A stretch of 11,422 nucleotides of DNA, taken from Amoeboradix gromovi X-113. Taxonomy: Eukaryota; Fungi; Sanchytriomycota. This document shows, piece after piece, positions 1 through 11,422 of this stretch (position 1 is its first letter; every line of letters begins with the position of its first letter). The DNA lies in assembly GCA_018985225.1 (NCBI GenBank), contig JADGIF010000298.1, positions 1-11,422 of the forward strand. The letters are read 5' to 3'. The notes beneath the pieces were generated by a model that saw nothing but the letters and a program-made list of their open reading frames with translations, did not search any database and was not told the origin of the DNA. Position numbers and translations under genes: made by a program.

Positions 1-157
1 ATTTCGATACAAAAAGTTATTTATTTTCCTTTTATACTCGTCAACTCCGCAACTAGCTGCATGTCCACTCGCCTCTTGAATCCATAAAATTAATAAAGCT
101 GAAATAATGTTCCAAGTTGTTACAGAATGTTAGTCCAGTTTATATTTGATGTCCCAT
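1..157 (+). repeat. Left arm of long inverted repeat bracketing the window (may extend beyond position 1)
   Basis: 1-157 aligns by hand to the reverse complement of 11260-11418 with 5 substitutions (left positions 60, 78, 89, 128, 135) and one 2-nt indel in a T run near 139-141; similarity decays after ...gatgtcccat. Confidence 0.97.
29..36 (-). promoter_or_regulatory. Putative TATA box (TATAAAAG) in left repeat arm, pointing out of the window
   Basis: cttttata at 29-36 is TATAAAAG on the minus strand; identical in both arms. Function is inferred from the motif alone. Confidence 0.35.
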
Positions 158-331
158 ATGCAAAAATTAGTAAGTTTTAGTTTAGAGTAATTGTCAAACC
201 CAAGGCTGCAGTTACGTGGAACTTGAATTTTCATTTTAAATAACTTCTAGCAGCAACTGAGTCACTAGCTTCGTATAAAGCAATCAGGTTTTGTCCATAT
301 TTTTTGAATAGTTCCGTCTAACATTGTTTTA

Positions 332-933
332 ATGTTTTCAGGAATTTTTGATTGGATTTGGAACGCATTAGCGCAATTAGGGCTTGTTAATAAGAGTGCC
401 AAGATTTTATTTCTGGGCTTGGATAATGCTGGGAAAACCACTTTGTTACACATGCTAAAGAATCAACGATTGGCAACTTTGCAACCTACGCTACATCCAA
501 CTAGCGAAGAACTCAACATTGGCAATATTAGATTTAACACTTTTGATCTTGGTGGTCATGAACAAGCTAGAAGATTATGGAGAGATTATTTTCCCGATGT
601 AGATGCAGTTGTATACCTTGTAGATGCTGCAGACCCAACAAGATTAGCAGAATCAAAATCTGAATTAGATCATTTGTTGCAATTGCAGGATCTCGCAACT
701 GTTCCATTTTTAATTTTAGGTAACAAGATTGACGCACCAAGCGCCGTAAGTGAAGAGTACTTAAGACAAGCACTAGGATTATCAAGCACTACAGGAAAGA
801 GCACTGGTAAATTAGGACCAAGTAATTCTTATTTAATATAGACGTTAGACCTATTGAGGTTTTTATGGTTAGTGTTGTAATGAGACAAGGATATGGCGAA
901 GGATTTAGATGGATGTCACAGTACATTAGTTAA
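332..933 (+). CDS. SAR1: SAR1 COPII small GTPase, 2 exons (332-821, 842-933), 193 aa
   Basis: [47 protein letters not shown]. Removing 822-841 restores the canonical C-terminus [30 protein letters not shown] with TAA at 931-933. Confidence 0.97.
822..841 (+). other. 20-nt spliceosomal intron in SAR1
   Basis: gtaattcttatttaatatag; GT-AG ends; excision removes the in-frame TAG and puts the conserved SAR1 C-terminus in frame. Confidence 0.92.
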
Positions 934-1005
934 TCTAATAAATGATTTCATCGTTTTACATATTGTTTCTTCGATTTTAAAGCATCATTTGGCCAAGGGA
1001 GAAAC

Positions 1006-1749
1006 ATGATAAAGTTCTCACGCACTGTTAAAACACATTTTGGATTCAAAAACGTCGATGCTTCTGCTAAGTCTACGCTTGTTCAAGATGTTTTCTCTAA
1101 TGTCGCTAATAATTATGACACTATGAATGATTTTATGAGTATGGGTGTCCATAGATGCTGGAAACAGCATTTTGTGCAAAGAATGGCACCGGTCCCTAGC
1201 ATGACTGTGCTAGATGTAGCTGGTGGTACAGGGGATATAGCGTATAAAATACACAAATATGCACCATCGACCAAAATTCAAGTACTTGACCTAAACAAAG
1301 AAATGCTAAGATTTGGCCAGGCGAAAAATAATACTAATACCATAAAGTTTATTCACGGAAATGCAGAGGATCTGCTTGACATACCTTCAGATAGTCAAGA
1401 CGTTTATAGTATTGTGTTTGGTATCAGAAATTGTACAAATATCGACAAGGTCATTTCTGAGGCCCATAGAGTGTTAAAGCTAGGCGGGCGTATGATGGTC
1501 ATGGAATTTTCAAAGGTGCACCCATTGGTTCAACCCTTTTACGACTGGTACTCCTTCAACGTGATTCCTCAAATTGGCAGGTATATTGCAAAGGATGAAA
1601 AAAGCTACAGGTACCTAGTAGAATCAATAAGGATGTTCCCAACACAAGATGAATTTCAGACTATGATGGCAGAGCATTTCGAAATGGAAAAGTTCGAGGA
1701 TTTGTCTGGAGGAATAGCTACAATATGGTCAGGATATAAACTGAAATAA
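1006..1749 (+). CDS. COQ5: COQ5/UbiE-family ubiquinone biosynthesis C-methyltransferase, 247 aa, intronless
   Basis: THFGFK, VFSNVANNYDTMNDFMSMGVHRCWK, SAM motif I VLDVAGGTGDIA, FGIRNCT, YDWYSFNVIPQIG, YRYLVESIRMFP. Confidence 0.95.
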   Translation: MIKFSRTVKTHFGFKNVDASAKSTLVQDVFSNVANNYDTMNDFMSMGVHRCWKQHFVQRMAPVPSMTVLDVAGGTGDIAYKIHKYAPSTKIQVLDLNKEMLRFGQAKNNTNTIKFIHGNAEDLLDIPSDSQDVYSIVFGIRNCTNIDKVISEAHRVLKLGGRMMVMEFSKVHPLVQPFYDWYSFNVIPQIGRYIAKDEKSYRYLVESIRMFPTQDEFQTMMAEHFEMEKFEDLSGGIATIWSGYKLK

Positions 1750-1832
1750 AAAAATTATTCAAATGTGTTGCAATTACTTGGGCCAGCGATAACTATAACA
1801 AAAGTAGGATGCAACTCGAAAACAAAAGTATA

Positions 1833-1903
1833 TGCGTGAGCCGGGAATCGAACCCGGGGCCCGTGCATGGCAAGCACGGATTTTACCACTAAACCACTCA
1901 CGC
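1833..1903 (-). tRNA. tRNA-Gly (anticodon GCC), intronless, CCA not encoded
   Basis: Minus strand GCGTGAG TGGTTTAGTGGTAAAATC CGTGC-TTGCCAT-GCACG GGC CCCGG GTTCGATT CCCGG CTCACGC A; 7-bp acceptor stem, D-loop AGTGGTA, T-loop TTCGATT; T4 run just downstream (aaaa 1824-1827 on +). Confidence 0.97.
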
Positions 1904-2172
1904 GCTACGGTGTATATCTGTTAAATTGTGAAATGTGAGCTTTATGAAATAGAAGTGCTTTTTTAGGTACGTTTTATGGGATTAGTATTGCGCTATTTCA
2001 ATATGTCTCTAGGAAATGAAAGAAATGCCACGTCCGGACATGACGTATGTAAACGAATGATAACATGATCTGGAATAAGCCATATCTTATCATTATTTAA
2101 AGCAAGCTCATTTGTAAAACACCCATTTTTCTTTTTATACTTGGCTTTCCCCAAACTGAAACAACAAAAAAC

Positions 2173-2725
2173 ATGGGCCAGCTTTTTTCGAGATTGTTTG
2201 GTGCAATTAAAAAGGAATCAAGGATACTTATCCTTGGTCTTGACAATGCTGGGAAAACTACAATTTTATATCGCTTACAGCTGGGCGAAATAGTTCAGAC
2301 TGTTCCCACCATTGGATTTAACGTAGAATCAGTGACTTATAAAAACACAACATTCCAAGTATGGGATCTTGGTGGGCAGAGCAGTATAAGACCTTATTGG
2401 CGTTGCTATTATGCACAAACCGATGCAATTATATACGTGGTTGATAGTAGTGACCAGGAAAGATTGTCGCTGGCACAGTCTGAACTTTTGAGTATGCTGG
2501 GTGAAGAAGAGCTAAAAGGTGTATTATTAATGGTATTAGCGAATAAACAAGATGTTCCACAAGCAAAAAGTGTAGTGGACATAAGCAATACGCTTGGCTT
2601 GCAAAAGGTATTTACTAGTAATTTAGTTGCAAGATAGAACATGGCAAATATTTAAATGTTCAGCATTGTCTGGACAAGGTATACATGAAGCATTTGACTG
2701 GCTTGTGCAACAATTGAATAAATAA
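2173..2725 (+). CDS. ARL1: ARL1 Arf-like small GTPase, 2 exons (2173-2607, 2627-2725), 177 aa
   Basis: N-terminal MG (myristoylation), [26 protein letters not shown]1-type [22 protein letters not shown]. Removing 2608-2626 gives [32 protein letters not shown] with TAA at 2723-2725. Confidence 0.95.
2608..2626 (+). other. 19-nt spliceosomal intron in ARL1
   Basis: gtatttactagtaatttag; excision restores the conserved DRxWQIFKxSA (G5) region and last helix. Confidence 0.92.
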
Positions 2726-2775
2726 TTGTAATAATTCAACAATTTAATTTCTCCTCGTTAAAATCTTGATTTTAC

Positions 2776-3392
2776 ATGAAATTCAAGAACTTACTCGCAG
2801 AAACTGACAGAGCCGGTTGCCTGTTTATAATTCTGGATCACACTTGCGATGCCCTAGACGGGATTAAACGTAAGTTTACAAACTTTGAATTTTAAATTCT
2901 TAGCTACCATAAGACTCTGTCTGGCTTGCAAATGGCTGCTTCCAATTTGATATTTGGATAAGACCCTCGCATATAACATGAAATCTTTCGAGGAAGATGT
3001 GGAAATATCAAACGACTCGTATTATCCCAATATTGGACAAGTTTCTGAGTGGGTACGACTGCACTCTATGTTTATTGTAATTTCTTCAGATTTTACGTAT
3101 TCCGGCTATACTCATAAGGAGACTTTTTCCGAAAGATGAGGGAAACACAATTAAGTTTAATGCAGTTAAAAAAGTCTGCAGAAAAGGAATTGAAGCGAGA
3201 GATTTCATGTAATCACATCTAATGATTTACTCAATTTAGAATCCAAAACTGTATGTAATAACTCATGATATTATAGGATACACAATCCTTGTAGAGACAA
3301 TCAGACTTGATAAGCCCATTTTTAATTATGATATTTTGGCGAAACTAACCCATAATACAACACACTCACGCCTAGGAGTAAACATGCCATAA
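2776..3392 (+). pseudogene. Possible degenerate multi-exon gene of unknown family
   Basis: ATG at 2776 and short coding-like frames separated by intron-like segments (2870-2903 gtaagt..cttag; 3209-3239 gtaatc..ctaat..tttag; 3251/3255-3276 gtatgtaat..tatag). I could not build a stop-free spliced frame (e.g. in-frame TGA at 2948-2950). Confidence 0.25.
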
Positions 3393-3770
3393 GTAAAATG
3401 TCTCCTAGGTATATATCTCTAGATAACATTTATACAGTGGTAGTAGTTTGTAACTTGTTAGTAACAAATGTCTTTTTGTCATTTCACTGCAATAGCTGTT
3501 TGTGCATTTAGATGCTTCAATCCGCCTGTTGGTGACTGTCTACAGTTGGAAATTTATGCTTCCCATACAAAAACAAAAGATCAAGGATTTATTGTTGAAA
3601 GCATTGAGAACTCAAGAAGTTTTAAGTTCCTTGCCGTATCATAAATTTACATATCAGAGTAGTTATAATAACCTGGAAACAACATTAATGACATGAATCA
3701 TCCTAGAATTCAAGAATAATCCTTAGAATATCTCGCGAAAATTGGACAATAGGCTTGACATTTAGTTGTT

Positions 3771-3875
3771 ATAACTCGACCTGACTGGGTTGGAACCGAT
3801 CATAATTAGAGCCGCCGGGCTCAACAACGAGTTGTTCCCAATCCTCTTTCTCAACAGGTAGAGAGGGGATCGTTG
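3771..3875 (+). ncRNA. Candidate structured RNA, family unassigned
   Basis: 50 of 100 bases G+C over 3771-3870; stem ataactcg/cgagttgt encloses hairpin gagcc-gccg-ggctc, followed by 11-bp hairpin atcctctttct/agagaggggat; non-Watson-Crick pairs are G-U only on the + strand. Confidence 0.35.
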
Positions 3876-4802
3876 AAAAAGTAAATCTATATTTGTAATA
3901 AATTAAAATCTAAAAATGGCATAAATACAGGTTGCATGGTATAATTTGTAGGGTTCCCACTATCTTAACCAGTTATTTTCGACAGTGAACATCATAAGAT
4001 TCGTTCTTCACCAGTTATTGGACCTGAGCGCCTAACTGGACATCTAGGGAATGCAACTCAGAACTTGCGACTGTTCGAGGTAATGAACTAATTAACTGGA
4101 GTGCTTTATTTTTAATCTTTTTATTCGAACCTTGATTCCATCTGTTTCCTATGCTTCTCATCTAAAGCCAGTTTCGCAGAAAGGCAGAATTTAGAAAAAG
4201 AACTCAAAGATGTTATTTGACCTTTAGAGCTGTCGTTCACACTCTGCTACCTTGAGGCGGGATTGAATGGGCTGCATATATTTTAACGCAACTACAAAAC
4301 CTGGTAAGAACGATTGGATTGATAGAATTCATGTAATCATGATAAACATTTTATTCGATTAGAATCTTAGAATGGCTATTCTCTAATACTGAATATCTTG
4401 CTTATAATTTTATGATACCCATCTTCAATTACTCAATCCCGCCCGCGTCTTTCGCAACTATATCATTTCTTTAGATTTGATTTTCTGCTTCTAAAGCATG
4501 GGCTTCTTCTTTTTTTTGTATTGTTGACTGCTGTCGTTTCTGAAGAATGTGCACTTCAGAATTGCAAAGACTGTAGAAATGTCATCAGAAAAATAATGAG
4601 ATCTTGCATATCTTTGTTAAAATAGCAGTAAATTTCAAAACAATCTCAAGATTTTTAGTAGACTTCAATTCCAACCTTCTGAAATATGCATACTCATTTT
4701 TAATCGATTATTATTAATTCGGATCTTATGAATAAGTTTTCAAACACATGCGAGGTGCCACATGGAATGCTGCATCCTTTGATTCCCATTTTAATTTAAA
4801 AC

Positions 4803-5219
4803 ATGAATATTTCTAAACTCAAACTGAATGAGGAATCGTTAAAATCAGATGAGAGCCAACAGACACTGAATAAAAATACTTCACCGACATCTGGTCACTT
4901 TCGGTTAAGCAACACAGAGTTGAATACTGATACTTTTTCTCATGTTGCAGAAGAATACAATACGCCGCTTTGGAAGAAGATTCTGTTTTGCACCACTGAG
5001 AAAAACTGCAACAATATAGCTTCCGATCAGAACTCTAGAATGCCAAGTAAACCGGAAATGGCAGAACAAAATGCATACGATGATGCTCTAACATGTGGAT
5101 GCATGCATTGTCCCAAATGTGACAGAGCAAGGTTCCAGTCTAAAAGAGACGAAAAACTTTTTCCCGAATCAAGCATAATTCAGCTTGAATTTGTTGACTT
5201 ATCAAAATACGAAACTTGA
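4803..5219 (+). CDS. Hypothetical protein, 138 aa, with Cys cluster CGCMHCPKC
   Basis: ATG in A-rich context (aaaacATG, as in COQ5 and ARL1); 138 open codons in AT-rich DNA; AATAAA at 5285-5290. No family recognised. Confidence 0.65.
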   Translation: MNISKLKLNEESLKSDESQQTLNKNTSPTSGHFRLSNTELNTDTFSHVAEEYNTPLWKKILFCTTEKNCNNIASDQNSRMPSKPEMAEQNAYDDALTCGCMHCPKCDRARFQSKRDEKLFPESSIIQLEFVDLSKYET

Positions 5220-5628
5220 TTCCAATTTTGATTATTTTTGTATTTACCTAAGCTTTAGCCATTATAAAAGCATAGATTGTTTTTAATAAATTTTATTAAT
5301 TACACTGGTTTCAATCATTTCATCCAACAGTTGCAACTTTATGATAGATGCTAGCATCTCTGGAATTGAATCTAAGATATGATAAAATTTTAATGATGGA
5401 CTGCATAACGCCTTGAAAAAATCATGAAAATGTTATGGTCCTACTGGTTCGTTTTATTTCTTCGTACTAGTTATTGACGACTAATTTTAATGGAGAGTTT
5501 ATTACGCTTGACTGTAATCCACACAGAAATACCTGTGTAATGCTTTATTTCTTTTGCACTCATCCCAGTCATCAATATGCAAATAAATTGATTTGGAAAA
5601 ACTGGTGTCCATTTTCAAGTGTGACACA

Positions 5629-7290
5629 ATGAACTCCATTCCGAGACAGTTTTGTGAACACCCTATCGGCTTTCATATTGCAAGACATTGCAAATTTAGC
5701 TACGCTTCATTCATAACAGATTACGCAATTAAGAACAACGATTATTACTTAATTCATGGGCTGCTTGACAACTGTTTAAAAAAGTACGTTAAAAACGAAA
5801 TTTCATGTCATACCGTATACAACTTGACTAGCATACTAATAGAGAAAAATCAATTTCCTAGATATCTCCAAAACTTAATTGGTCCTAACTGGTATAGAAG
5901 TCGAATAGTTGATATATTAGGGAAGCATAAATTGCAACCAGTTCCATGGACTAGTAACCTGTACGAAAAAAGTGTCAAGGAACTAAGAACTCATCTAGTT
6001 AATAACAAGAATATAATTATAAATTCAAAATATTTTGAAGAGTCTCCTAAATCTTTGTCTCCTAAATTGCGCATTAGAAACGCACAGCAGTTACTTATCA
6101 AAGACAAAGTATTTGACGTTAATGTTTACTATAGATACTACTGTAGCTGTATTCCATCCGGTCATTTCAGGGATATCATCACTTTTTATTTCAATCATTT
6201 GATGTCAAGTGACATTAAAATGGAGGACTTAAAAGACTCTAGCTCGATAATAGAGCACTTAAACTATATGAAGGAGCACTGCAATACTCTTATTTTGTCA
6301 GAGAATGATGCTGCTTTTCATATTATATCATGGTGCACAATAATAGGATGTTTAAATAAACGAGTTTTAAGTAGGCCCACTAACGAATACATATTTGCGA
6401 TATTCATATGCATGAGTGCCATTCAATCGCTGTTAAATAATGGATCCAAATTGCACCATACCACACTTCTTCATTGCCTCGGTTATTTCTTTGTCTTAGA
6501 TAAAGTTCAGATGTTTTCTTCACGTACTATACGATTTACACATAGACACACACTCGGCATCCCTTTAAGTGAGATCTACAGTAGGTACCAACAGTACTAT
6601 AGCACGATTCAAGCAAACATTCCGAAAATCAAAGATTACAAGTTAATGTCGATGACTATGCGATTTGTTGATTTGCAGTTCGATTCTCTTGACTATAACT
6701 ATAAGCTTTCCAGGTTTAAAGTAGGATTGCCCCACATTGGTCTTTCGGAAATGGTTGAAATATGTAAAAATATTGAAGATGAGGAGATATTTTTCTACAT
6801 CAGATGTATTATTGGTCACGGAAAGAGTGTTAACAGCCTAGAGTATATCAAATCAAATATAAACGCACTAATTTTAAATGAGATACTATCACCTGAGACA
6901 GCATGGTATTATGTTTTAAATCATTTATCGTACTTTCCTTCAAACGGGATATTTCTCCGAGAGCTCTATGAATATGTAGTTAGAAAGCATCCCAACGATG
7001 ATATTATAGTAGGAACGAGTACTTTTCTTTATTTAAGAGGATTGTGCCACATAGAAATTAGAATAGTTGTAAATTGGATGAAAGATTATATAGATGATGC
7101 ACCTTTCAACGATGCAAGGCTAGTAGCCGTACTAAACAAAATGAAACTGAAGAGTTTTAAGTCTAGTTTAGAATTTAACAAATTTTTGGATTCATTACCA
7201 TTGCCAGAACAAAAGAAAAAAGATTTCAGTAGCAAAATAATCATGAAACCATCAGATAAAAAGAAGAAGAGGCGTAGCATTAAAGTCTAA
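5629..7290 (+). CDS. Hypothetical protein, ~553 aa from first ATG, basic C-terminal NLS-like tail
   Basis: 1.7-kb uninterrupted frame (open from 5587; track start 5593 is TTG, first ATG 5629); ends KKKKRRSIKV. No catalytic motif recognised. Confidence 0.8.
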   Translation: MNSIPRQFCEHPIGFHIARHCKFSYASFITDYAIKNNDYYLIHGLLDNCLKKYVKNEISCHTVYNLTSILIEKNQFPRYLQNLIGPNWYRSRIVDILGKHKLQPVPWTSNLYEKSVKELRTHLVNNKNIIINSKYFEESPKSLSPKLRIRNAQQLLIKDKVFDVNVYYRYYCSCIPSGHFRDIITFYFNHLMSSDIKMEDLKDSSSIIEHLNYMKEHCNTLILSENDAAFHIISWCTIIGCLNKRVLSRPTNEYIFAIFICMSAIQSLLNNGSKLHHTTLLHCLGYFFVLDKVQMFSSRTIRFTHRHTLGIPLSEIYSRYQQYYSTIQANIPKIKDYKLMSMTMRFVDLQFDSLDYNYKLSRFKVGLPHIGLSEMVEICKNIEDEEIFFYIRCIIGHGKSVNSLEYIKSNINALILNEILSPETAWYYVLNHLSYFPSNGIFLRELYEYVVRKHPNDDIIVGTSTFLYLRGLCHIEIRIVVNWMKDYIDDAPFNDARLVAVLNKMKLKSFKSSLEFNKFLDSLPLPEQKKKDFSSKIIMKPSDKKKKRRSIKV

Positions 7291-8063
7291 GCTATTCTAT
7301 TTTATAGTGACATTTCTATGCTAATAGCTGCCTTAATATTCATATTATAGCTTTAGCTGCAGTTTGAGACTACAGAAATCATTGATGTTGGTCACCACTC
7401 AGTTGAGTGCTTATAATGAAGTAGGCAGATGATGAATTTTACTGAATAAATCATTTATCGAGTGTGTCTTTTTACGTAAATACTCTTCTTTTCTAGATAC
7501 CACGAATGGGATAAAAACACGGGATCCCGCTCTTCATCAATAACAAATAGTTCTAAACCTTGCCATACTGAATGTATCAGACCTAAAGAAACAACTAATA
7601 TATGTAGTATACACTCATCGACATTGAGAAACTGGTTTAGTAATATGAAAATTTTATTTCTTTCGACGGTGTCTCATTACGCATTCAAAGAGCGTTCAAG
7701 TGTAAAGAGAGAAGAAAGAGGATAGTGCATATGTATCCCTATTCAATCCAGTCTTGGGGTAGTGCAAGCGTGGGCAATTACTGTTATGGAGAAATTAATA
7801 TCTCTAAAAATTATGATTCTCTCAAAAATCAAGTCTTTTAATGAGAAGTCCATAACCAACTACAGTTGACATCTAAGGATATCCTTGGATCCAAGTTAGA
7901 AGCATTTTTTACTAGTGATATTCAAATAGTTGATGCAAGTCTTTCAGACTTTACGTAATTCTGAAATTTTCGTATCTGATGCTAGTAAGAGAATAAAACA
8001 GCTTATTTTGATATACTTGAACACTTCAAACTTAATTTGGCAAGCATTAGCCTTATCTCCTTG

Positions 8064-9437
8064 ATGCAAGTTTTCAAATCTTTACAAGAATCTTTCAAGT
8101 CTGGCAAAACCATTGATTTGGCATTTCGAAAACAGCAACTTCAAAAACTAATAGAGATGCTAATCAATGAGCGTGATCCTATTCAAGATGCCGTATATAA
8201 GGATTTGAAAAAGAGACCATCTGATGTTCTACTCAATGAAATCCAGTTGTGTATCAACGAAGCTAAGCATGCTATTGTACATCTGGAGGCTTGGTCTTCT
8301 GTTGAGTATGTGGAAAAGAAATGGGCAAATGTTTTAGATTCTGCGTACATTAAAAAAGACCCAAAAGGTGTTGCTCTCATAATTGCGCCATGGAACTTCC
8401 CTGTTCAACTCAGTATATGCCCATTGGTATCTCTCATTGCTAGTGGCTGCGTCGGTATTGTCAAACCTAGTGAAATCGCCGTAAATACCAGCGCTTGCTT
8501 AGCAGCTATCTTGAATAAATATTTAGATCCTGCATGCTACGCTGTTATTGAAGGAGATGTTAAAATCACTACTGACTTGTTAAAGTTGCCATTTGATCAC
8601 ATATTTTATACAGGTAGCACTGCTGTTGGTAAAATCATCATGAAGGCAGCTGCTGAACATCTGTCCACAGTCACTTTGGAACTGGGTGGTGCAAATGCAT
8701 GTTTTGTTGACAACACCGTAGATTTAAAAATAGCCGCAAAGCGTATTGCCTGGTTAAAAACTAACAACTGTGGACAAATCTGTTTGAGCATTAATTATTT
8801 GTTCATTACACCTGATCTTGTAGACTCATTTGTCGCTCATTATAAGCAATCTCTAATAGAGATGTATGGTGCAGATGTTGCCAATAGTTCTGACTACACT
8901 CGCATTATTAATTCTAACCATTTCGACAGAATACTTAAAATTTTAGATAAAATTGATAAGAAAAATGTTTTATTGGGTGGCCAAAGCGACAAAAAATCAT
9001 TGTATATTGCCCCTACTGTTGTAAAAGCTACTTTGGATGACAAGTACATTCAAGACGAGTTGTTTGCTCCAATTCTTCCAATTATCCCCATAGATGATTT
9101 AAACAAGGGAATTGAGTTTGCAGCTAAATTACCGAAGCCATTAGCTAGTTATGTGTTCAGCCATGACTCGAAATTGCAAAAGTCGGTAGTTGATGGGATT
9201 ATCAGTGGAACAGCCATGGTGAATGATGTACTAATGCATGCAGCTTACACGTCATTACCATTCGGGGGATGCGGGGCTAGTGGGCAGGGCAGTTATCATG
9301 GTCAGTATGGGTTTAATCAGTTTACATACAACAGAGCTGTTTTACATCGACCAATGATAGATGAGCCTTTAATGACAATTAGGTACCCACCACTGACAGA
9401 TTCCAAAGTAGGTTGGTTAAACTTTCTAGCGGGTTAA
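8064..9437 (+). CDS. Class-3 (fatty/aromatic) aldehyde dehydrogenase, ALDH3/HFD1-like, ~457 aa
   Basis: FRKQQL, PKGVALIIAPWNFP, VKPSE, FDHIFYTGSTAVGKIIM, TLELGG, catalytic Cys in GQIC, ELFAPILP, LPFGGCGASGQGSYHG, RYPP. First ATG is 8064 (track start 8037 is TTG). Confidence 0.93.
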   Translation: MQVFKSLQESFKSGKTIDLAFRKQQLQKLIEMLINERDPIQDAVYKDLKKRPSDVLLNEIQLCINEAKHAIVHLEAWSSVEYVEKKWANVLDSAYIKKDPKGVALIIAPWNFPVQLSICPLVSLIASGCVGIVKPSEIAVNTSACLAAILNKYLDPACYAVIEGDVKITTDLLKLPFDHIFYTGSTAVGKIIMKAAAEHLSTVTLELGGANACFVDNTVDLKIAAKRIAWLKTNNCGQICLSINYLFITPDLVDSFVAHYKQSLIEMYGADVANSSDYTRIINSNHFDRILKILDKIDKKNVLLGGQSDKKSLYIAPTVVKATLDDKYIQDELFAPILPIIPIDDLNKGIEFAAKLPKPLASYVFSHDSKLQKSVVDGIISGTAMVNDVLMHAAYTSLPFGGCGASGQGSYHGQYGFNQFTYNRAVLHRPMIDEPLMTIRYPPLTDSKVGWLNFLAG

Positions 9438-9451
9438 ATAAACAAATGATA

Positions 9452-9591
9452 TTACTAGCCCTTTGGCCCTACGCTTTCTTTTAACATCTTCTGGTAAGCC
9501 TTGTTGAGGCGTTACCAGCTGGAAATCTGCTTTACGCATCGCTTTAGAGCTTCAGCACCTAACCCTGGTGATTAACAAGGATTGCTAGTAA
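9452..9591. ncRNA. Candidate structured RNA or miniature inverted-repeat element between convergent genes
   Basis: 63 of 140 bases G+C; ends pair (ttactagc-cctt / aagg-att-gctagtaa); internal hairpins ctggtaagcct/aggc(g)ttaccag (9491-9518) and cacc/ggtg (9556-9570). Confidence 0.4.
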
Positions 9592-9602
9592 AATAAATTT
9601 AT

Positions 9603-11164
9603 TCACACTTGGTGGTGACTTTTACTGGCAATGTTTTTCTTCAATCTACTTCCTTTCTTTAAAATGCTTGCCAAGTCTATTTGTTTCAAATTTAATCTGA
9701 CTTGATCAGGGAATAGAAATACAGATTCTTTGCCATCAATATAAGCACTACATTAAAAAGTATTTACTCTACCGAAGGAAACTGTTTGTGCTGAAAGTGT
9801 GGTGGTTCGAGTAACACTGGATTCACAATCATCAATCGCTCCTTTGCGCCATTCGGTTTCTCGCTTGAAAGGGTTGAAACTGAATTGTTGTGTCTTAAAC
9901 TACCCAGAACATCATCGCTCGTATCCAGCACAGCTTTTTTTAATGCTGCCAACAAAGTTAATTTGTCCAACTCATAATCTATCTCTGTATAGTAATTTTC
10001 GGGATTTATTCTGTTAATAGTATAGTAGTCGACATTCATCTCGCTATCTAACGAGACGTCTAAATTCAATAAAGCGGCACATGCTGCCAGTCCACTCTCA
10101 GCTTCCTCATTTAGCAAAACAGGTACTACGGGCTTGAATAAAGGTTTCCGTTGTGAAATCGCAAATTTTACAGGATTTGATTCCGAGAGTTTAGTGTTTT
10201 CATGTTTTTCCGGCACAGAATTACTATACTCCTCGCAAATATATTCGTACAATGATTTGATCTCTCTTTCTTTAAGCAAGTATGAACTCACAAATGAGTT
10301 TCTAAAATCTTTAAAGGTCTCTAAATATCCTACGAATTCTTCCAGTTCTTTTAAGACTTGAACGTTCTTTTCTTTTTTTAAATCTGATTTGCTTTGAGTT
10401 TCTATTTGAACAAATCCGCGAGTTTCCTGCTTGTTTTCTTTGAAAATGCGCTGCTCTTGCTTTTCTTTGATTAATCGATCGATCTCTAACATTTCTGTGT
10501 TAAATGCAGCATTTTCCTTGTCGTTCTTTTCCATTAATTGTACAGCTTTCATTTTTAATTCCTCACGTATCTCGTAATTTTGATTACAATTATCAATTGC
10601 TTGTGATATCCTTAATTTTAAAGATTTAAGCTCTGATTCGTACCTATGGTTTTGATCCTCGAACAAAGTCTTTTGTTTTACTAACCCACTAATCTTGTTT
10701 CTCAAAAACGCATTAACGCTGTGATAGTTGTTGTATCTAGTGGTGTACTTTTCAAATGAGATATCTGAATCTTTTTTTTCAGTCTCAAAGAGTCTGGGTT
10801 TAACATCAATTTTTGTATTATCTTTGACCAGTTCTTTTTGCATCATTATCAAACTTTCGTGTTCATTTTTTGAAGCTTTTAATTTCATTTGAATTTCATC
10901 CACAGCTTTTACATTCTCTTCTTTTATCAGTTTTTCTTTTGCTTTCTTCTTTTCCGTGTGCTCTATATCCTTCAGATGTGATACATAGTAAGTTGAATCA
11001 TTTTCCAAGTGTTGCAACACTTTCTTGGCAGTGTTTTGATATCCCACTGAACCTTTTGAGATCAGTTGCTTTTCTTTGTCCACTTTGGCTATTTGCCTTT
11101 TTAATTGATTTGCATCACTAATAGAATGTTCTTGCCCATCAATGCTTGGATCTGCTCTATCCAT
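9603..11164 (-). CDS. Coiled-coil protein of the outer dynein arm docking complex family (ODAD1/CCDC114/CCDC63-like), 2 exons (11164-9768, 9747-9603), 513 aa
   Basis: RYNNYHSVNAFLRNKISGLVKQKTLFEDQNHRYESEL...IDNCNQNYEIREE...EKNDKE...EMLEIDRLI fits the family pattern as I recall it (FNxxLxxNxxLRxxIxxLxxxxxxF...IxxSxxAYxxRxE...EKxxKE...ExxELxRxI). Removing 9748-9767 adds a 48-codon exon ending TGA at 9605-9603 overlapped by AATAAA. Confidence 0.72.
9748..9767 (-). other. 20-nt spliceosomal intron in the CCDC114-like gene
   Basis: Minus strand gtaaatactttttaatgtag; contains the TAA that ends the raw ORF; the downstream exon is open for 47 sense codons and ends in TGAATAAA. Confidence 0.75.
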
Positions 11165-11259
11165 TTTGGCCTAGTTAGTTAGACAAACAAAGCCAGAAAA
11201 CATTTCAAATAAAAACATCAAGTAGACTCATAAAGTGCAAATGTTCCATATTTTATCAA

Positions 11260-11418
11260 ATGGGACATCAAATATAAAAACTGAACTAACTTTCTGTAAC
11301 AACTTGGAACATTATTTCAGCTTTATTAACTTTATGGATTTAAGAGGCGAGTGGACATTCAGCTAGTTGCGGAGTTGACGAGTATAAAAGGAAAATAAAT
11401 AACTTTTTGTATCGAAAT
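11260..11418 (-). repeat. Right arm of long inverted repeat bracketing the window
   Basis: Reverse complement matches 1-157 (position 1 pairs with 11418); 4 further bases (ttca) run to the window end. Confidence 0.97.
11383..11390 (+). promoter_or_regulatory. Putative TATA box (TATAAAAG) in right repeat arm, pointing out of the window
   Basis: ttgacgagTATAAAAG: canonical TATAWAWR preceded by a TGACG half-site; window ends 32 nt downstream. Confidence 0.35.
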
Positions 11419-11422
11419 TTCA

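Follow-up and report, generated by a model that had tools for sequence, protein, structure and literature searches.

Inverted terminal repeats of an Amoeboradix gromovi contig are very probably the stubs of two copies of one abundant miniature element

Introduction

A block of ordinary genes flanked by inverted repeats brings to mind several described systems. In Pack-MULEs and composite transposons, host genes lie between inverted transposon copies. MITEs are short, high-copy elements with terminal inverted repeats (TIRs). In short-read assemblies, contigs can end inside high-copy dispersed repeats. Finally, Fanzor nucleases are encoded in transposons of eukaryotes and giant viruses, and in their RuvC-II motif Gly or Pro takes the place of the Glu, while an alternative Glu lies approximately 45 residues off (PMC10530073).

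Here, we analyse a stretch of 11,422 nucleotides of Amoeboradix gromovi (henceforth, the window), which is one whole contig (C546) of the 1319 contigs and 10.5 Mb of short-read SPAdes assembly that were searched. The DNA was amplified by MDA, followed by Illumina reads and assembly with SPAdes in single-cell mode to 10.5 Mb; in the text of the genome paper, neither 'repeat' nor 'transpos' occurs (PMC8371127). A first-pass annotation had described the window as a housekeeping-gene block enclosed by near-perfect terminal inverted repeats and had proposed four alternative explanations for it.

Results

A repeat search within the window pairs positions 1-145 with 11274-11418 (96% complementary), and a further segment extends the match to approximately 178 and 11239; a 145-nt match at this level is far beyond chance. 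Local alignment of the left arm (1-156) with the right arm (11261-11422) yields five substitutions, at 60, 78, 89, 128 and 135, and one 2-nt indel after 138; the two arms, A and B, are 95% identical, and their flanks differ. In this respect, the inverted repeat described earlier is real, including its five substitutions and its indel. Its right end, however, had been placed at 11418, whereas the final four nucleotides, 11419-11422 (TGAA on the reverse strand), fit the family consensus (...TTTTTGAA, then ATTTCG), and the right arm is therefore 11261-11422, with both arms touching the very ends of the contig. On the inner side, the two arms cease to match at the element terminus ...GATGTCCCA, which falls at 156 in the left arm and at 11261 in the right arm.

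Both arms are truncated 5' ends of a miniature TIR element. Copy A (1..156, minus strand) comprises the approximately 30-nt 5' TIR and the 5' leader, and hundreds of copies are 94-97% identical to it over this part; read in its own direction, it begins at 156 (TGGGACATCAAATATAAA...) and leaves the contig on the left. Copy B (11261..11422, plus strand) begins at 11261 (TGGGACATCAAATATAAAAA...) and leaves the contig on the right. In other words, the terminus TGGGACA points into the interior of the window at both ends (156 and 11261). In element orientation, the flank of copy A (157..172, minus strand) reads TAATTTTT-G-CA-TA and then TGGGACA, which is the family-wide 5'-flank signature described below, and that of copy B (11245..11260, plus strand) carries the same signature, reading ATTTTAT-CA-AA and then TGGGACA. 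No telomere-like tract is seen at the window ends, which read ATTTCGATAC... and ...TTTCA, that is, interior element sequence. RNA folding of the 5' arm revealed nothing unusual (z = -0.98 and +0.93).

The genes listed in the first-pass annotation were recovered by domain and tRNA searches. Namely, the window contains an Arf-family SAR1-like gene (332-841), UbiE/COQ5 (1006-1749), tRNA-Gly(GCC) (1833-1903, minus strand), an Arf-family ARL1-like gene (2173-2637), Aldedh (8037-9437) and an ODAD1 coiled coil (9764-11164, minus strand). SAR1 and ARL1 were translated from spliced models. Each insertion lies upstream of a gene, one at approximately 175 bp from the SAR1-like gene and the other at approximately 97 bp from the ODAD1-like gene. 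The interior of approximately 11.1 kb is single copy in the genome, except for the tRNA and one other, unrelated dispersed repeat. No transposase is present among the interior genes, and a tblastn search of the interior found no TnpB/Fanzor coding sequence; the end sequences and the gene list agree with the earlier statement that the window holds neither a telomeric tract nor a transposase. Exact-protein look-ups with the ODAD1-like and COQ5-like products, aimed at a public assembly that would bridge the window ends, returned no record.

How common is the arm sequence elsewhere? Searched against the genome, a 160-mer of the arm yields 689 first-look candidates, the best 40 of which, all scored, are 94-100% identical, and the ORF tail of the element has 987; counted as such first-look candidates, the family comprises about 700-1000 copies. 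Arm B is merely the 15th-best genome match to arm A, copies on other contigs matching arm A better, and each of the two arms resembles a different subset of family members. All copies share the sharp inner boundary at ...GATGTCCCA, and all internal copies extend past the point that corresponds to window position 1, by 300-570 bp, via ...GAGAATAGCTGTACAGAATATTTATTTTTGAA. The unit is approximately 520 bp long, with a described range of 440-730 bp and several deletion variants, while the 21 complete copies have units of 311-828 bp and TIRs of approximately 30-35 nt, with the sequence TGGGACA[C/T]CAAATATAAAAACT[A/G]GACTAAC. Among 54 distinct copies, the 5' flank carries CA at -5/-4 in 52-53 cases, positions -12 to -7 are nearly all A/T, and two variable bases adjoin the TIR. 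This signature is asymmetric, being confined to the 5' side of the element. What is more, no target-site duplication was detected at any offset tried in the 21 complete copies. One copy (L021) is a nested insertion, in which the host fragment is too short to rebuild the empty site. The 5' leader remains 95-97% identical even where the remainder of the element has dropped to 78%. A transposase gene with these element ends was not found in the genome, and neither the tail profile nor the TIR picked up relatives in a scan of viral contigs.

The same family recurs at the ends of contigs. In a systematic sample of 80 ends from 40 contigs, 22 ends stop within the element family (12 at its 5' tip and 10 at its ORF-tail tip), at depths that vary from 37 to 250 nt. 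Six of the 40 contigs carry the element at both ends, and two (C1231 and C1278) carry inverted arms on both ends, like the window. Moreover, 15 of the best 40 of the 689 arm matches fall within approximately 130 nt of a contig end. With a copy every 10-15 kb or so in the 10.5-Mb genome, contigs with two stubs are to be expected as a common product. A TTAGGG array is found nowhere in the assembly, and there is hence no positive control for true chromosome ends.

Longer copies reveal where the miniature element comes from. A 1662-bp copy (L153) has both element TIRs, and another (L155) contains a 427-aa frame (L155:30-1313), shares the ends of the element, and has a stop codon that overlaps the 3' TIR. 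The ORF tail of the element aligns with the C-terminus of these longer in-genome reading frames, and the mini-element is an internal-deletion derivative of longer TIR copies with the same ends. In the L155 frame, motifs of the Fanzor type occur in the expected order, namely GIDPGVK (D116, the RuvC-I Asp), FWGDG (G293), NESYTSKHCSVC (E331), KCTFC and FERDVG (D385, the RuvC-III Asp), with CSVC and CTFC as the CxxC zinc knuckles. In particular, G293 occupies the canonical RuvC-II Glu site and E331 follows 38 residues further on, a pattern that agrees with the published change of Glu to Gly or Pro (PMC10530073). The N-terminus of the parent frame is basic and NLS-like.

For these proteins, the PF07282 scores are 26.1, 24.6 and 20.8 bits at a cut-off of 26.3. 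In the ESM Atlas, the nearest clusters stand at 0.97, Cas12f1-like TNB/DUF8286 is present in 21 of 30 hits, and the neighbours are TNB-domain proteins, mostly of giant viruses and also of green algae. A PDB sequence search with the parent frame gave no match, Pfam and PDB searches with the 110-125-aa tail alone gave nothing useful, and a word-based homology search with the 427-aa frame gave only three matches. A HMMER search with the 130-aa mini-ORF gave only six matches, each either a short fragment or a repeat protein that is unrelated; through one of the six (P0005), the longer copies within the genome were found. When the frame was compared by hhalign with the other Fanzor-like protein of this genome (C542), only the IDPGV motif aligned, and not significantly. 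AlphaFold, run on an 8-row alignment, produced a model with a pLDDT of 38.6, which is unusable. A scan of the genome with PF07282 recovered a separate mini-element family of 560 candidates, distinct from that of the arms. Taken together, the motifs, the sub-threshold Pfam scores and the language-model similarity point to a parent nuclease of the Fanzor/TnpB type.

Discussion

We are confident that the window is a contig whose ends fall within two copies of one abundant miniature TIR element, inserted independently and in opposite orientations. The copy number, the geometry, the enrichment at contig ends and the deletion link to longer copies are established by direct observation. Judging from the behaviour of the family, the locus likely continues past positions 1 and 11422, and the element copies themselves likely caused the break in the assembly here. 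Namely, near-identical copies would be impassable for the assembler, which would then halt approximately 160 nt into each element and leave the identical element tip on both ends of the contig. Since an element at a contig end has to run outward, two stubs with the same tip must look like inverted 'terminal' repeats. The 11.1 kb between the stubs would be ordinary single-copy chromosomal DNA. This is the most mundane of the four alternatives in the first-pass annotation, a break at inverted copies of a dispersed repeat, and it is borne out by the 689 candidates, the continuing internal copies and the 22 of 80 sampled ends. The count of arm copies across the assembly, which had been recommended as a check, likewise showed a highly multicopy 160-mer and the inverted both-end picture in two of the 40 sampled contigs.

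Could the arms have a meaning of their own? One can argue for a linear mini-chromosome, or a processed DNA molecule with shared terminal inverted repeats, from the fact that both arms extend to the contig ends and that further contigs begin or finish with arm sequence. However, the arm sequence also lies mid-contig in many contigs, where it always runs 300-570 bp further, and at contig ends the element is cut at many points and at either tip. The window ends lack a telomeric tract, with the caveat that the TTAGGG control is lacking in the assembly, and the published assembly was built from short reads and is fragmented. As both arms are repeat copies cut short and telomeric tracts are absent, the mini-chromosome, which had been the first alternative on offer, is unsupported, and we give it practically no credence. 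A composite or Pack-MULE-like transposon, in which two flanking elements move the 11-kb gene block as cargo, would fit the inverted TIR-element copies on both sides, and their outer TIRs could in principle cooperate. That said, the visible termini face inward and the outer edges are off the contig, which places the gene block outside both elements; the interior occurs as a single copy, with no transposed extra copy of the cargo in the assembly; and the arms resemble unrelated copies at least as much as they resemble each other. The same picture is present in approximately 5% of sampled contigs, roughly the chance level given that 27% of ends lie in the family, and the interior is without a transposase. 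With inward termini and a single-copy interior, the capture of host genes that had been suggested fails on geometry, and is highly improbable.

Recombination between inverted element copies might also flip the 11-kb block, making it an invertible segment, and inverted copies such as these (approximately 95% identical, approximately 500 bp if full length, and 11 kb apart) can indeed recombine. Yet there is no recombinase, and neither a second orientation nor any other evidence speaks for this third proposal of the annotation. With approximately 1000 copies in the genome, inverted pairs are everywhere and the pair in the window is not special; we consider an invertible segment very unlikely. MDA is known to generate inverted chimeras. 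The DNA analysed here was MDA-amplified (PMC8371127), and a chimera or fold-back artefact could have duplicated one end of the contig in inverted orientation. This is refuted by the divergence of the arms (five substitutions, a 2-nt indel and unlike flanks), which match separate subsets of the family. The annotation had already taken this divergence to mean two real copies, correctly in our view, and the chance of a fold-back artefact is negligible. A contig broken within two independent copies of the element thus remains our reading of the window, and the 'enclosure' of the gene block has no significance in itself, since it is produced by the stopping points of the assembler. As a single family accounts for about one quarter of the sampled ends, 'terminal repeats' on contigs of this assembly, be they inverted or direct, should be discounted. 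Many of these contigs would merge in an assembly of long reads.

The family itself, which accounts for a few percent of the 10.5 Mb of this fungal genome, is of moderate interest, and the window holds only two non-coding stubs of it. As for its origin, a TIR transposon with a Fanzor/TnpB-type nuclease gene would have given rise to the mini-element by internal deletion. The latter would have retained the 5' leader, which is the segment present in the window, the first approximately 40 codons (NLS-like) and the last approximately 85 codons into the 3' TIR. One can speculate further, in a reading that we regard as tentative and rather doubtful, that these approximately 700-1000 Fanzor-derived mini-elements insert without target-site duplication, two variable bases past a CA that is preceded by an A/T tract. 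The asymmetric, TAM-like signature might then reflect non-canonical insertion or homing in a eukaryotic nucleus, possibly linked to a nuclease or a guide, and the 5' leader might be functionally constrained.

How does the locus compare with the described systems? With Pack-MULEs and composite transposons it shares host genes between inverted transposon copies, and it differs from them in its inward termini, its single-copy cargo and its arms, which are independent family members. With the Fanzor nucleases of eukaryotic and giant-virus transposons (PMC10530073), the parent frame shares RuvC-I, the RuvC-II Gly with a Glu 38 residues on, RuvC-III, the two CxxC knuckles, the NLS-like N-terminus and the stop codon over the 3' TIR. 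Unlike them, it has no significant database match or sequence relative of solved structure, and the window contains just the non-coding 5' end of the element. The mini-elements resemble MITEs in their length of 440-730 bp, their approximately 30-nt TIRs, their hundreds of copies, their deletion variants and the longer copies with the same ends. However, they have no detectable target-site duplication, which is unusual for a classical MITE, and display an asymmetric, 5'-only flank signature instead; nor was a transposase gene with their ends found here. Finally, the window has in common with the breaks of short-read assemblies at dispersed repeats the same unbridgeable high-copy repeat, the contigs that end inside it and the stubs that are left behind. 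From these breaks it differs in nothing essential, except that the density of the repeat is unusually high.

Results and Discussion

The terminal inverted repeats only appear to enclose the window: the enclosure is an artefact of assembly at two genuine copies of an abundant miniature element, which is likely Fanzor-derived. That said, the inverted arms themselves are real. A repeat search of the window pairs 1-145 with 11274-11418 at 96% complementarity; in a local alignment, which contains 5 substitutions and a single 2-nt indel, both arms reach a common terminus, ...GATGTCCCA, at positions 156 (left) and 11261 (right). The first-pass annotation rightly placed them near the ends, but the 4-nt gap it left is wrong: the contig's final four bases fit the family consensus (...TTTTTGAA|ATTTCGATAC) and thus belong to the repeat, so that both arms extend to the physical contig ends.

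The first 160 nt of the window have 689 first-look candidates in the same genome, with 94-100% identity in all 40 scored. The contig's right arm ranks only 15th among the genome's matches to the left arm, and the two are therefore no special pair. Copies internal to contigs all extend upstream of window position 1 (...GAGAATAGCTGTACAGAATATTTATTTTTGAA), while similarity among copies ends sharply at ...TGTCCCA, on the side toward the window interior. When these internal copies are compared, a unit of ~520 bp emerges, bounded by terminal inverted repeats (TIRs) of ~30-35 nt (TGGGACA[C/T]CAAATATAAAAACT[A/G]GACTAAC); its deletion variants measure 311-828 bp. Consequently, each arm represents the tip of an element that has its body beyond the contig, and neither element includes the 11.1 kb between the arms; judging from other family copies, the locus would continue past both window ends. 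In particular, the arms are the element's non-coding 5' end. At the opposite end, an open frame of ~85-125 codons, encoded on the other strand relative to window 1-156, closes the element, and its stop codon overlaps the 3' TIR; this tail (...CTFCLDAQRP...WYNRRSFINDS...NELV*) has 987 first-look candidates in the genome. In some copies an ATG survives, followed by a basic N-terminus (MAKRKQKLSYTSKSKKKK...) that reads in frame into this tail, a pattern that would be expected from internal deletion.

Why do the arms sit at the contig ends? Among 40 contigs taken at even steps along the contig list, with 700 nt read from each end, 22 of the 80 ends lie inside the mini-element, 12 with the 5' tip, as in the window, and 10 with the ORF-tail tip, the stubs kept being 37-250 nt long. 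The element occupies both ends in six of the 40 contigs, two of which (C1231 and C1278) reproduce the window's picture exactly, with 5' tips inverted at both ends. Moreover, when the 40 highest-ranking matches to the arm in the genome are considered, 15 are no more than ~130 nt from a contig end, where about 3% would be expected from random placement in ~8-kb contigs. The published sanchytrid assemblies were made in SPAdes single-cell mode from Illumina reads of MDA-amplified DNA, the one for Amoeboradix gromovi amounting to 10.5 Mb, and neither "repeat" nor "transpos" occurs in the text of the genome paper (PMC8371127). The assembler would have stopped inside two independent copies of the element, leaving a tip at each contig end. 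Since each element has to run outward, two such stubs that preserve the same tip will inevitably appear inverted; in other words, the "terminal inverted repeat" is a product of the stopping point. The most mundane proposal of the first-pass annotation, a contig broken at two inverted copies of a dispersed repeat, is thus correct.

Target-site duplications, which had been proposed as a check, are absent at any offset in 21 complete element copies. The flanks of 54 copies (loci L005-L066) show instead a strict, asymmetric pattern on the 5' side: CA at -5/-4 in 52-53 of them, almost purely A/T from -12 to -7, and two variable bases adjoining the TIR (TGGGACA); the 3' flank is a weak mirror image, NN-TG. 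Both window arms follow the 5' pattern (157-172 and 11245-11260), as one would expect of two normal, independent insertions. The distance from the insertion to the gene start downstream of it is ~175 bp for the SAR1-like gene and ~97 bp for the ODAD1-like gene.

The gene list given earlier is borne out: SAR1-like and ARL1-like genes of the Arf family, UbiE/COQ5, aldehyde dehydrogenase, the coiled-coil protein ODAD1, and tRNA-Gly(GCC) at 1833-1903 (-), whose region (about 1820-1908) recurs at 97% identity on contig C829. The SAR1-like and ARL1-like genes have, near their 3' ends, tiny GT...AG introns of 20 nt (822-841) and 19 nt (2608-2626), whose removal restores conserved C-termini in predicted products of 193 and 177 aa. 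The stretch at 2640-4800, ~2.2 kb without an ORF above 64 aa, is an unusually long spacer for so compact a genome; it is essentially single copy, with only four short genome matches (52-87 nt) at at least 79% identity, and may be a decayed gene or one split by mini-introns. Between it and the aldehyde dehydrogenase gene lies a 565-aa open frame without a Pfam match (5593-7290, +). The spacer upstream of the latter gene holds a different dispersed repeat (~7411-7850; 118 first-look candidates, 73-80% identity), in which tblastn finds no Fanzor-like coding potential.

Could the arms nevertheless delimit something real? A mini-chromosome with shared terminal repeats is disfavoured: its ends are truncated repeat copies, the arm sequence is also internal to many contigs, and the window has no telomeric tract, as had been stated, albeit TTAGGG arrays occur nowhere in the assembly, hence there is no positive control for telomeric ends. 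A Pack-MULE or composite transposon carrying the gene block is likewise disfavoured, given that the element termini face inward, that the interior is single copy save for the ~7411-7850 repeat and the tRNA, and that gene and domain annotation and tblastn reveal no transposase or Fanzor coding sequence between the arms, the former in line with the first-pass annotation. An invertible segment is possible for any inverted pair, and nothing singles out this one. Finally, an MDA fold-back artefact is excluded, since the two arms have diverged, which was already read as a sign of two real copies, and differ in their flanks.

Where does the mini-element, at two copies of which the contig is broken, come from? 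A library-wide HMMER search with a mini-ORF of the fused kind gave six hits only, one of which, P0005, a 256-aa fragment from the same genome, prolongs the tail upstream through ...VELVDEYHTSKMCSVCENEIDKSNDVS... and led to two informative copies. The first (L153:1378-3039, contig C33) is 1662 bp long with both TIRs; against the mini-elements it reaches 96% identity in the 5' leader but only 78% in the tail, a mosaic that points to either sequence exchange among subfamilies or a strongly constrained leader. The second, L155 on contig C1157, has a 427-aa open frame, which likewise terminates in the family's 3' TIR and to whose C-terminus the mini-element tail aligns. Scans of viral contigs with the tail profile and with the TIR turned up no intact relatives sharing these ends. 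A distinct mini-element family with a clear PF07282 (Cas12f1-like TNB) tail has 560 candidates genome-wide, including a copy with a 569-aa open frame and canonical TnpB/Fanzor motifs (L072:1417-3126 (-), contig C542).

With proteins of the window's own family, a PDB sequence search gave no hit, an hhalign comparison with the other Fanzor-like protein of the genome was not significant, and an AlphaFold model was unusable. PF07282 scores three members at 20.8-26.1 bits, just below the 26.3 cut-off, and the ESM Atlas places the 427-aa protein at 0.97 beside TNB/DUF8286 clusters of mainly giant-virus and green-algal origin; we regard both as weaker support than the motifs. From N- to C-terminus, L155 contains GIDPGVK (RuvC-I, D116), IFWGDG (Gly293 in place of the TnpB RuvC-II Glu), NESYTSKHCSVC (Glu331, and the first CxxC), KCTFC and FERDVGSSSFI (RuvC-III, D385). 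On these sequence grounds, an origin of the mini-element from Fanzor/TnpB, a family of RNA-guided nucleases, is likely. Indeed, in Fanzor proteins Gly or Pro replaces the Glu and an alternative Glu lies ~45 residues away (PMC10530073), a signature that L155 shares, with Gly293 for Glu and the alternative Glu331 38 residues on.
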